The notes under the pieces: model-generated | The model's database searches: none | What the model was told of the DNA's origin: nothing | What the model saw: only the letters and a program-made list of their open reading frames with translations | Part shown: in pieces, positions 39,122 through 57,096 of the stretch | How the letters are laid out: each line of letters starts with the position of its first letter | Position numbering within the stretch: position 1 is the stretch's first letter | Translations under genes and position numbers: made by a program | Sequence record: KJ019142.1 | DNA: 64,000 nt | Reading direction: 5' to 3' (one strand)

Positions 39122-39160
39122 TCCAATAGCTCCGACGAGTTATCACATATGTGTTTCACG

Positions 39161-39184
39161 AGGACCCTTCGGGGTCCTTTTTTT
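39161..39184 (+). terminator. Rho-independent terminator after g23
   Basis: AGGACCC-TTCG-GGGTCCT followed by TTTTTT. Confidence 0.93.
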
Positions 39185-39228
39185 ATGCACTCATAAATGG
39201 GAGCAGAGTGGTGATATCCCTACATCAT

Positions 39229-55216: not shown

Positions 55217-55623
55217 CCCTGGAACTCAAAGACTGGTTGAATAGTTTAAACATGAGTAAGGAAGACCTTATTGATGGAGATCCTGATGTGGAGAAAGAGT
55301 ATCCACCATTCATTGTCAATAAGTGTATGTCTGGTCAGATGGACGCACTTATGTTTGCTAATGAGATGAATAAGTTCCCCTCACTAGATAAAAAGTTACA
55401 ATATGATTTTTATCTAAATAGTTTGCGGAAGAGAAAGCGTTTCTCTCCTTGGTTAAGGAAGGATAAGATTAAACACCTTGAGACCGTTCGTAAGTTTTAT
55501 GGCTTTTCCACTGAAAAAGCAGAACAAGCTTTGAATATTTTATCCAATGAACAACTTGACTTTATCTATGATAAGCTTGACACTGGGGGAACCAAACCAT
55601 GCAAACGGACGAAAGGGGGGTAG
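55213..55623 (+). CDS. g62: Clamp loader small subunit gp62
   Basis: YPPFIVNKCMS; ANEMN; LQYDFYLNSLRKRKRFSPW. Confidence 0.93.
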   Translation: MTLELKDWLNSLNMSKEDLIDGDPDVEKEYPPFIVNKCMSGQMDALMFANEMNKFPSLDKKLQYDFYLNSLRKRKRFSPWLRKDKIKHLETVRKFYGFSTEKAEQALNILSNEQLDFIYDKLDTGGTKPCKRTKGG

Positions 55624-56027
55624 TATCTTGGGACCCCTCATATATGATAGAAGTATTTTTGTCAGAACCTGACGACTTCTTAAAAGTAAGAGAAACTCTT
55701 ACTCGTATTGGTGTGGCATCTCGCAAAGAGAAGAAGATATATCAGTCTTGTCATATTCTACATAAACAGGGAAGATACTTTATAGTTCATTTTAAGGAAC
55801 TCTTTGCCCTTGATGGTAAGCATACTACAATTACCTTGAATGATATACAGAGACGCAATCGTATTGTTAAACTACTATCCGATTGGAACTTGATTGAAGT
55901 TTCGGATAGTATCGATATTACAGATGTTGCCCCTCTGAATCAAATAAAGGTTCTCTCATATAAAGAAAAGGAAGACTGGATACTGGAACCGAAATATAAC
56001 ATTGGAAGTGTGAAACGTTCAGAATAA
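55599..56027 (+). CDS. regA: Translational repressor RegA
   Basis: PDDFLKVRETLTRIGVASRK...YQSCHILHKQGRYFIVHFKELFALDG. Confidence 0.96.
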   Translation: MQTDERGVVSWDPSYMIEVFLSEPDDFLKVRETLTRIGVASRKEKKIYQSCHILHKQGRYFIVHFKELFALDGKHTTITLNDIQRRNRIVKLLSDWNLIEVSDSIDITDVAPLNQIKVLSYKEKEDWILEPKYNIGSVKRSE

Positions 56028-56033
56028 CAGGGA

Positions 56034-56059
56034 GGGGGGGTATCCACACCCCCTTTTTT
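56034..56059 (+). terminator. Terminator after regA
   Basis: GGGGGT-atccac-ACCCCC followed by TTTTTT. Confidence 0.85.
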
Positions 56060-56071
56060 GTGCCTAATCTG

Positions 56072-56137
56072 ATAAATAGATGAGTAGTCGCCACTCAGGG
56101 ACTACACCTTATACATCTCGCTTATTAGGAGAAACAC
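56072..56137 (+). promoter_or_regulatory. Late promoter (ATAAATA) plus two-hairpin, ROSE-like 5' leader of hsp20
   Basis: Hairpin 1 is GTAGTC...GACTAC; hairpin 2 is TCTC(G)CT-TATT-AGGAGA, which pairs over the SD. Confidence 0.65.
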
Positions 56138-56581
56138 ATGTCTGGATTAGCACGCTATTATGGTTCTGGGGATATTGAGAAGTTCCTCAAGGACGTTGAT
56201 AAGTATTCAATCGGAATGGATGAATGGTTCCATAGGTTCGGAGCACTTCACCAAACAGAAGCAAACTACCCACCCTACAACGTTATTCAGGAGAATGCAG
56301 TCTCCTATCGTGTGGAGGTTGCAGTTGCTGGATTTGCAACAAAAGAACTAGAAGTATTCACAGAGAACAACAAACTCTACGTGGAGGGTCAGAAGGAACT
56401 GGCAGAGCCTAAGGAGGGTGAGTCCTATGTTCATCGTGGGGTGGCTGCAAGGTCCTTCAAGAGGGTCTGGACCATCTCTGATGACGTGGAAGTGAAGGAC
56501 GTGGAGGTTTCCAATGGTCTCCTCACCATCCGACTCTCTCGTATCGTTCCTGACCACCAGAAGAGACGTTCCTATCTCTGA
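56138..56581 (+). CDS. hsp20: Small heat-shock protein Hsp20 (IbpA-like)
   Basis: NYPPYNV; EVAVAGF; YVHRGVAARSFKRVWTISDDVEV; NGLLTIRL..IVPDHQK. Confidence 0.95.
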   Translation: MSGLARYYGSGDIEKFLKDVDKYSIGMDEWFHRFGALHQTEANYPPYNVIQENAVSYRVEVAVAGFATKELEVFTENNKLYVEGQKELAEPKEGESYVHRGVAARSFKRVWTISDDVEVKDVEVSNGLLTIRLSRIVPDHQKRRSYL

Positions 56582-56643
56582 CCTATATATCAGTGAGACT
56601 ATTTTCTCTGGGAGTATTGATCTCCCAAATATCGTCGCACCTG

Positions 56644-56694
56644 GGGGGTCCTGTCACAAAACAGGGTTGCCCCCTTTTTGGTGCATGTTATAAT
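56644..56694 (+). terminator. Nested-hairpin terminator after hsp20, overlapping a sigma70 promoter (TTGCCC-N16-TATAAT)
   Basis: GGGGG..CCTGT-cacaaa-ACAGG..CCCCC followed by TTTTT, then TGTTATAAT at 56686-56694. Confidence 0.65.
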
Positions 56695-56709: not shown

Positions 56710-57096
56710 ATGAACAATGATTATGATAGGGAACTTCCTTCCCCAACCGGATCTACGGGGGCAGTTGAACTAATGATTGAATCTATTGACTTGATGAGCA
56801 ACAATGATCCAGTAGTAAAACTAGTTCTACTGAAGAATAATGAAACTATTATTGCTGAGGTTCGTGAGAGTATCGATGGAAGTAGTGTTCAGCTCATTGA
56901 TCCTCGTGTAGTTCTACTACAGGCAGCAAGACCATCTGATGACGGACAGACTACAACAACTGCCATCTCATATACCGACTGGTTACCTTTGTCTGAGAGT
57001 AGAAACTTCACTATTGATGGTGATTATGTGGTCCTTATCACTGATCCCATTGAAAGTTTAGTACAAAGTTATACACAGGCACGACAAAATGGATGA
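56710..57096 (+). CDS. Conserved hypothetical protein (start uncertain)
   Basis: VKLVLLKNNETIIAEV...WLPLS.....I..DYVV.ITDP; usual pre-g43 position. Confidence 0.7.
   Translation: MNNDYDRELPSPTGSTGAVELMIESIDLMSNNDPVVKLVLLKNNETIIAEVRESIDGSSVQLIDPRVVLLQAARPSDDGQTTTTAISYTDWLPLSESRNFTIDGDYVVLITDPIESLVQSYTQARQNG

Follow-up and report, generated by a model that had tools for sequence, protein, structure and literature searches.

We analysed a window of 64,000 nucleotides (nt) from sequence record KJ019142.1, identified as the T4-like cyanomyovirus Synechococcus phage ACG-2014f, and found that its small heat-shock gene hsp20 (start codon at 56138) follows a short leader of two hairpins, which with high confidence is a ROSE-like leader masking the Shine-Dalgarno (SD) site. 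Leaders of this kind are defined by the motif U(U/C)GCU, which pairs imperfectly with the SD within the 3'-proximal hairpin and is predicted to leave one G bulged (PMC3669281, PMC11342760). The explanation that fits best as a whole, and that we hold to be reasonably probable, is a messenger RNA (mRNA) made behind a late-type promoter box, whose two-hairpin ROSE-like leader would expose the SD on heating. The leader stands above chance because it is conserved and covaries in relatives and because a covariance model built out of sample recovers it from the window.

Structure, conservation and covariation of the hsp20 leader

The positions that a first-pass annotation had given for the promoter box ATAAATA, both hairpins, UCGCU, G56120, AGGAG and the ATG were all confirmed in the sequence, and the two hairpins that it had drawn are exactly those predicted by ViennaRNA. 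Hairpin I (56084-56105, + strand) reads GUAGUC[G]CC-ACUCA-GG-GACUAC, with the bracketed G56090 bulged, and folds at -8.8 kcal/mol (z -3.1). An unpaired spacer (56106-56115, + strand), which among relatives measures 0-15 nt and varies in sequence, leads to the putative sensor, hairpin II (56116-56132, + strand), which reads UCUC[G]CU-UAUU-AG-GAGA and folds at -3.3 kcal/mol at 37 °C (z -2.7; 9 of 200 shuffles were equally good) and at -5.3 kcal/mol at 20 °C. Within hairpin II, UCGCU (56118-56122), which contains the bulged G56120, is predicted by ViennaRNA to pair with AGGA (56127-56130) of the SD AGGAG (56127-56131) on the 3' arm, and the hsp20 AUG at 56138 is unpaired, 5 nt beyond the hairpin. 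The minimum free energy (MFE) structure of the 66-nt leader consists of hairpins I and II at -14.4 kcal/mol. The two hairpins share one format, a pyrimidine, a bulged G and C(C/U) facing a 3' arm of (G/A)GG, and hairpin I resembles a GC-stabilised copy of the anti-SD/SD helix, as it also does in the consensus of the Rfam family ROSE_3; duplication and alternative pairing are both conceivable origins of this likeness.

Seen in the window sequence alone, hairpin II is weak and its motif lies within chance, which weighs against a thermometer and would suit an ordinary SD that is fortuitously complementary to nearby bases. In a 40-nt context hairpin II folded no better than shuffles (z -0.2), and in a 91-nt context the MFE structure was another fold and the centroid lacked hairpin II. 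One instance of the pattern TCGCTN{3,7}AGGAG was counted in the window, where 0.24 were expected; 23 of 100 shuffles contained one or more.

The comparison with relatives drew on 240 IMG/VR loci, collected with three different phage Hsp20 queries, and 17 isolate genomes. Directly before the hsp20 ATG, (U/C)GCU followed after 3-7 nt by AGG was present in 253 of the 253 loci having upstream sequence, and GCU was invariant across 138 distinct 32-nt versions of the motif region. The stem below the bulged G covaries: CUC/GAG is the common form, GUC/GAC occurs in one clade, and AGAC/GUCU, AGAU/GUCU, AGAU/AUCU and, in S-TIM5, CCAC/GUGG are further forms, with no off-diagonal combination among the examined leaders. 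The bulged G is itself invariant, and in the predicted structures of 61 of 61 distinct leaders its neighbours are paired. When these leaders were aligned by fitting to the model, five pairs of the hairpin II core were standard in all 61, the top U-A pair being gapped in 2, and pair swaps were seen between C-G and G-C (43/18) and between U-A and A-U (55/6), a pattern on which an alignment made with MAFFT only agrees.

In a whole-leader MAFFT alignment of 61 leaders, unequal loops misaligned the 3' arm of hairpin II, and RNAalifold saw hairpin I only. For covariation, 31 leaders with a common loop length of 5 nt, none from the ACG-2014f clade, were aligned with MAFFT alone. Paired cells made up 89.4% in this alignment compared with 75.5% in shuffles, and none of 500 shuffles attained the observed value; when partners were slid by 1-3 columns, the paired fraction fell to 31-56%. 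Two-sided, compensatory changes were present in 10 of the 14 pairs over both hairpins, and across phages 6 of the 8 pairs of hairpin I carry such changes. On the Hsp20 protein tree a single clade with good support holds the GU/AC class of stems, the GA/UC class is dispersed and S-TIM5 represents CA/UG, which gives a minimum of three independent compensatory events. Several stem changes weaken the SD (GGAC, GGUCU) yet keep the hairpin, which argues that the pairing itself is under selection. The check across cyanophage hsp20 5' untranslated regions (UTRs) that the first-pass annotation had proposed therefore came out in its favour, the anti-SD pairing being kept by compensatory changes, and the U(U/C)GCU anti-SD that it had recognised, together with its bulged G, is invariant or covarying in about 250 phage homologs.

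A covariance model built from these 31 leaders, again without the ACG-2014f clade (model R1), matched the window significantly only once, across 56084-56140 of the + strand (31.6 bits, E = 2e-7), and this match was full length and held no non-canonical pair. Over 62 sources R1 gave one match per locus, always the hsp20 leader, in 61 of 62. These comparative data, from the complete conservation of the motif to the out-of-sample match, refute a chance hairpin, the probability of which we consider negligible. The only other R1 match in the window, at 39160-39199 (E = 0.25, not significant), is terminator-like, lacks hairpin II and is most likely an ordinary terminator; its hairpin GAGGACCCUUCGGGGUCCU is similar to hairpin I and has a U-run behind it. 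Second TCGCT...AGGAG matches found in some loci lie inside coding sequence and were attributed to chance.

The conservation could also reflect a site that acts at the DNA level or binds another protein, in which case the conserved sequence ACTCGCTT would be a PhoB box, a promoter element or an operator for RegA. The equivalent S-PM2d sequence ATTCAAACTCGCTTAAATA is listed as a putative Pho box (PMC10976474), and regA adjoins hsp20 in many of these phages. However, the fragment upstream of S-PM2d hsp20 showed neither PhoB binding nor a low-phosphate response (PMC10976474), and the motif is located downstream of the promoter box, within the transcript. Compensatory changes over two helices indicate an RNA structure and not a linear DNA or RNA site, and a RegA operator is unlikely because the element is also present where regA is not adjacent, as in S-SCSM1, P-SSM5, S-RIM2 and the Ralstonia and Sinorhizobium phages. 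Overall, a site of this type seems very improbable to us, and the conserved leader accounts for a motif that was once taken for a Pho box and failed that test (PMC10976474).

Proposed temperature gating and other possible roles of the leader

In the mechanism that we propose, the hsp20 mRNA would start at about 56084, just after the late-type box, and carry a 54-nt 5' leader with two hairpins. Hairpin I would form a stable 5'-terminal stem, probably for mRNA protection and as a folding aid, and in hairpin II the UCGCU-AGGA pairing, with G56120 turned out, would hide the ribosome-binding site behind five or six weak pairs. At ambient sea temperature hairpin II would limit 30S binding, and on warming the bulge-weakened helix would open and translation of Hsp20 would rise without a host heat-shock sigma factor. 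We infer both that the SD is masked in vivo and that control is independent of host sigma factors, and by analogy with bacterial leaders we think it fairly likely that temperature gates the phage leader. In Pseudomonas, hairpin II alone suffices for thermoregulation (PMC3669281), and deletion of the bulged G lowers heat induction in a ROSE-like element (PMC11342760). The IbpA-type protein encoded by hsp20 supports ROSE-like control as well, since ROSE-like elements control this gene class (PMC3669281).

Several points speak against temperature gating. Nearest-neighbour calculations gave no transition in the physiological range, a result that we count neither way: the two-state melting temperature of the isolated hairpin II was about 74 °C, and the SD accessibility computed for the full leader remained flat over 5-50 °C, with values of 0.28-0.36. 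The helix above the bulge has only 2 base pairs (bp), against 3 for Salmonella and 4 for the Pseudomonas-type leader, and repression may accordingly be slight. Marine Synechococcus experiences a narrow temperature range. Furthermore, the invariance of G, C and U exceeds what pairing needs and could reflect contact with a protein.

The weakness of hairpin II would also suit a constitutive role, in which the hairpins were inherited with an acquired ibpA cassette and only set mRNA stability (hairpin I) and a fixed, moderate level of translation (hairpin II), the leader giving no regulatory response at the temperatures met by the host. The phage hairpin II is far weaker than bacterial ones (median free energy at 37 °C of -1.6 kcal/mol in phages, -4.7 in the Pseudomonas-type leader and -4.2 in Salmonella), the whole leader folds at -14.6 compared with -22.1 kcal/mol, and the flat SD accessibility agrees with a fixed output. 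A less stable Pseudomonas leader, of -15 kcal/mol, was expressed at a high basal level and induced only 3.9-fold (PMC3669281). Nevertheless, the anti-SD pairing is under very strong purifying and compensatory selection, even at a cost in SD strength, as is the bulged G, which a passive element would hardly account for, and a switch for 10-28 °C would also need a weaker helix. The weak hairpin II would thus suit a switch tuned to that range and could equally mean little repression, and we judge a purely constitutive leader to be unlikely.

The leader might instead, or in addition to sensing temperature, be the operator through which phage Hsp20 represses its own synthesis. Free Hsp20 would bind the leader until misfolded or aggregating proteins titrate it late in infection and translation is released, so that the leader would sense aggregation. 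IbpA of E. coli, Cedecea and Vibrio is a repressor of its own translation that binds the ROSE-like 5' UTR of its mRNA, and this requires R93, an aromatic side chain at position 34 and cationic ones at 97 and 98 (PMC10474464). Phage Hsp20 keeps the equivalents of R93, Y34 and R97 (R105, Y44 and R109 in the window), the arginine equivalent to R105 being invariant in 10 phage Hsp20 sequences, and the invariance of the G, C and U of the motif in about 250 loci, including the unpaired bulged G, fits a sequence-specific contact. A load sensor would also be biologically sensible at constant sea temperature. By contrast, the equivalent of K98, whose alanine mutant lost repression in E. coli, is replaced by V, S, G, N or Q, and an arginine of the R93 type is widespread in alpha-crystallin domains and therefore non-specific. 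From these analogies self-repression, alone or combined with thermosensing, is a serious possibility, though less likely than not.

Promoter, gene and distribution

Upstream of the leader, the window carries the T4-type late-promoter-like box ATAAATA (56072-56078, + strand), identified by its sequence. Among 184 distinct leaders, 82 have a TAAATA whose end lies 7-11 nt, mostly 8-9, ahead of the hairpin I bulge, the distance of the window ATAAATA being 10 nt; TATAAT occupies that place in 46 of the 184, and the remainder are variants. The late promoter proposed in the first-pass annotation was therefore upheld as far as the fixed distance of TAAATA is concerned, but close relatives carry TATAAT in its place, and thus 'late' expression is not universal. 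Within the ACG-2014f cluster the box alternates between late-type (G/C)TAAATA and sigma-70-type TATAAT, locus L001 having TATAAT and L002 and L005 CTAAATA, both stems being identical, and the timing of hsp20 expression may differ among near-identical phages. The geometry of T4 late promoters was used to place the start of transcription, which by this analogy would coincide with the base that opens hairpin I, at about 56084.

Contigs from marine metatranscriptomes span 56073-56565, 56100-56430 and 56115-56322, at greater depth than over the neighbouring genes, with gaps in coverage over the terminators on both sides (0-0.8 at 56008-56058; ends at about 56581-56619), which shows that hsp20 is expressed as its own block. 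One contig extends upstream of the predicted start, and since contig ends are not transcript ends, the contigs lend no support to the start site. The upstream terminator, an intrinsic one that follows regA (56027-56061, + strand; a G/C-rich stem followed by UUUUUU, -20.1 kcal/mol, z -2.75), separates regA, an open reading frame (ORF) at 55599-56027, from the hsp20 unit. The unit is closed by a terminator-like hairpin with a U-run (56637-56684, + strand; -25.4 kcal/mol, z -2.77), which a simple terminator scan of the window did not call. A good sigma-70-like promoter at 56667-56694 (TTGCCC-16-TATAAT, with TG upstream and agreement at 10 of 12 positions) overlaps this terminator at its end, and the next ORF starts at 56710.

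The identity of the region was clear from several ACG-2014f genomes that match it at 100%, in which GenBank labels the two genes 'translation repressor' (regA) and then 'Hsp20 heat shock protein' (KJ019085 and others). The hsp20 ORF (56138-56581, + strand) encodes 147 amino acids with a PF00011 domain, and its top NCBIfam model is the IbpA equivalog (8e-27, 93.9 bits, the cut-off of 212 bits not being reached), with IbpB ranking behind; on these matches hsp20 is assigned as an IbpA-type small heat-shock gene. A protein homologue search with Hsp20 returned phage-like metagenomic proteins only and no named cellular relatives. T4-like cyanophages have 25 core genes, of which hsp20 is one (PMC3037559).

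Beyond cyanophages, the leader was detected in Sinorhizobium phage Phosso (42 bits) and Ralstonia phage RsoM2USA (27.6 bits), and both hairpins, as well as UUGCU or CUCGCU ahead of the SD, also occur in Mosig and HTVC115P, which are Pelagibacter phages. A two-hairpin pattern scan of genome contigs gave at least 120 loci, none of them beside a small heat-shock protein gene among the matches listed, which were ascribed to chance in GC-rich genomes. With due tentativeness, the small heat-shock gene and its ROSE-like leader may be viewed as a mobile cassette spread across viruses of cyanobacteria, SAR11, Ralstonia and Sinorhizobium and as a virus-owned, host-independent dual sensor of heat and Hsp20, in which rising temperature would open the leader and free phage Hsp20 would keep it closed in an R105-dependent manner. 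If so, chaperone supply would follow heat as well as the misfolded-protein load while capsids are produced late in infection, and a core gene of T4-like cyanophages would carry the first viral ROSE-type thermometer, a handle on the effect of temperature on infection. The leader would, in addition, exemplify a gene that travels with its own cis-regulatory RNA, and it bears on whether sea temperature directly tunes cyanophage gene expression.

The conserved leader also corrects hsp20 start codons in several GenBank records, the annotated starts of S-SRM01 (NC_070963), P-HM2 (NC_015284), S-SSM4 (NC_020875) and S-CAM7 (KU686213) looking wrong by it. The annotated start of S-SRM01 and P-HM2 is an upstream ATG, inside hairpin I and before hairpin I respectively, so that the leader is read as protein, and in S-SSM4 and S-CAM7 the start has been put at an internal codon, far downstream from the ATG next to the SD.

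Relation to ROSE families and known thermosensors

When the Rfam ROSE families were compared with the window, no match was found at E <= 10, and the other Rfam matches there (snR161, ar15 and others) were terminator-driven noise. The ROSE_3 model (69 positions, two hairpins) matched the hsp20 leader, and nothing else, in the six phages S-SM2, S-SCSM1, S-8S53, S-CAM9, S-SRM01 and S-RIM44, with scores of 19-25 bits that are under the gathering score of 43. Both the empty window search and these low scores are points against the ROSE assignment, although the gathering score is an operational yardstick and not a mechanistic one. In the printed alignment, hairpin I (GGAU[G]CC GAAC GGGUCC) tracks the ROSE_3 consensus nearly base for base, and the (U/C)[G]CC...GGG core of the window hairpin I is present in that consensus too. 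The comparison with Rfam ROSE models that had been suggested for this leader thus gave no match in the window itself and only sub-threshold ROSE_3 matches in six relatives.

Bacterial ibpA loci that are filed in the phage collection served as comparators. As positive controls, 'UNVERIFIED Pseudomonas phage Y7' (OQ572409) scored 69 bits on ROSE_3, and on ROSE_2 a Salmonella ibpA locus scored 95 bits and 'UNVERIFIED Campylobacter phage A11a' (MG065691) 100 bits. R1 in turn matched the 69-bit ROSE_3 instance at the same place, with both hairpins aligned (20 bits, E = 9e-5). Given that ROSE_3 detects the phage leaders and R1 detects ROSE_3, the relationship is reciprocal, and the ROSE assignment of the first-pass annotation gains a type, the two-hairpin layout being that of ROSE_3 with cross-detection in both directions. 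On the scores, the phage element is divergent, lying below Rfam thresholds despite this reciprocal relationship.

R1 also matched leaders of ibpB (locus L382, 842-896, and locus L383, A11a, 843-898; ACUCGCU..AAGGAGA, E = 0.0004-0.003), and since these matches are in the ibpA-ibpB intergenic region, ibpB has a ROSE-like SD hairpin of its own, apart from the ROSE_2 of ibpA. The phage-filed records with bacterial-type ibpA or ibpAB loci are OQ572409, MG065691 and the Salmonella contigs AFYI01000003 and AGRM01000003, and an enterobacterial ibpAB filed under a Campylobacter phage points to DNA of a host or contaminant or to misfiling of the record.

ROSE-like thermometers have been described for alpha- and gamma-proteobacteria, and a 2024 review regarded temperature-responsive RNA structures in phages as still speculation (PMC10884466). 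Full-text literature on RNA thermometers, ROSE and hsp20 in cyanophages and other phages yielded no earlier description, its coverage being incomplete and an earlier mention possible, and as far as that literature goes the phage leader would be the first of the ROSE-like family in viruses. What is already known is the ROSE-like kind, with ROSE_3 as the nearest Rfam relative; what would be new is the viral carrier, the host phylum, the phage promoters that replace sigma-32 and the minimal sensor helix.

The cIII thermosensor of phage lambda is likewise a phage mRNA whose translation depends on a temperature-sensitive RNA structure, but it switches between two alternative structures with the opposite logic, has no ROSE motif and is unrelated to heat-shock genes. 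In Synechocystis hsp17 and the Anabaena 'avalong' (PMC4152365), hairpins in the 5' UTR of small heat-shock genes mask the SD and work in cyanobacterial cytoplasm. Compared by description, hsp17 is a class of its own and both belong to host-type small heat-shock genes and not to the IbpA type; avalong has been described as ROSE-like with two hairpins and, unlike the phage leader, has a bulged U instead of a G and a long hairpin 1 (PMC4152365). ROSE1 of Bradyrhizobium japonicum hspA shares the U(U/C)GCU anti-SD, the bulged G and the 3'-proximal position of the hairpin (PMC3669281, PMC11342760), whereas this classical element is longer, has 3-4 hairpins and also pairs its AUG, and its Rfam family does not match the phage leaders.

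The E. coli and Salmonella ibpA leader (ROSE_2, RF01832) has the same CUCGCU...AGGAG core before an IbpA-type gene, but the enterobacterial hairpins score 95-100 bits, which no phage leader does, and enterobacterial ibpA sits in an ibpAB operon under sigma-32. The closest counterpart is the ROSE-like leader of Pseudomonas ibpA (ROSE_3, RF02523), which is short and has two hairpins (Krajewski et al. 2013, PMC3669281). The two have in common a leader of about 55-62 nt, an IbpA-type gene, an unpaired AUG, a hairpin I core of (A/G)U[G]CC...GGG(U) with a bulged G, and in hairpin II a U(U/C)GCU-SD pairing across a bulged G. The phage leader differs in its shorter helix above the bulge, which lacks flanking G-C pairs, in its lower overall stability, in the late-type or sigma-70-type boxes that take the place of sigma-32, and in its carriers, which are viruses, mostly of cyanobacteria. 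Taken together, these likenesses and differences mark the element, with high confidence, as a short ROSE-like leader, divergent and carried by phages, in front of an IbpA-type gene, and as a homolog of proteobacterial ibpA leaders.

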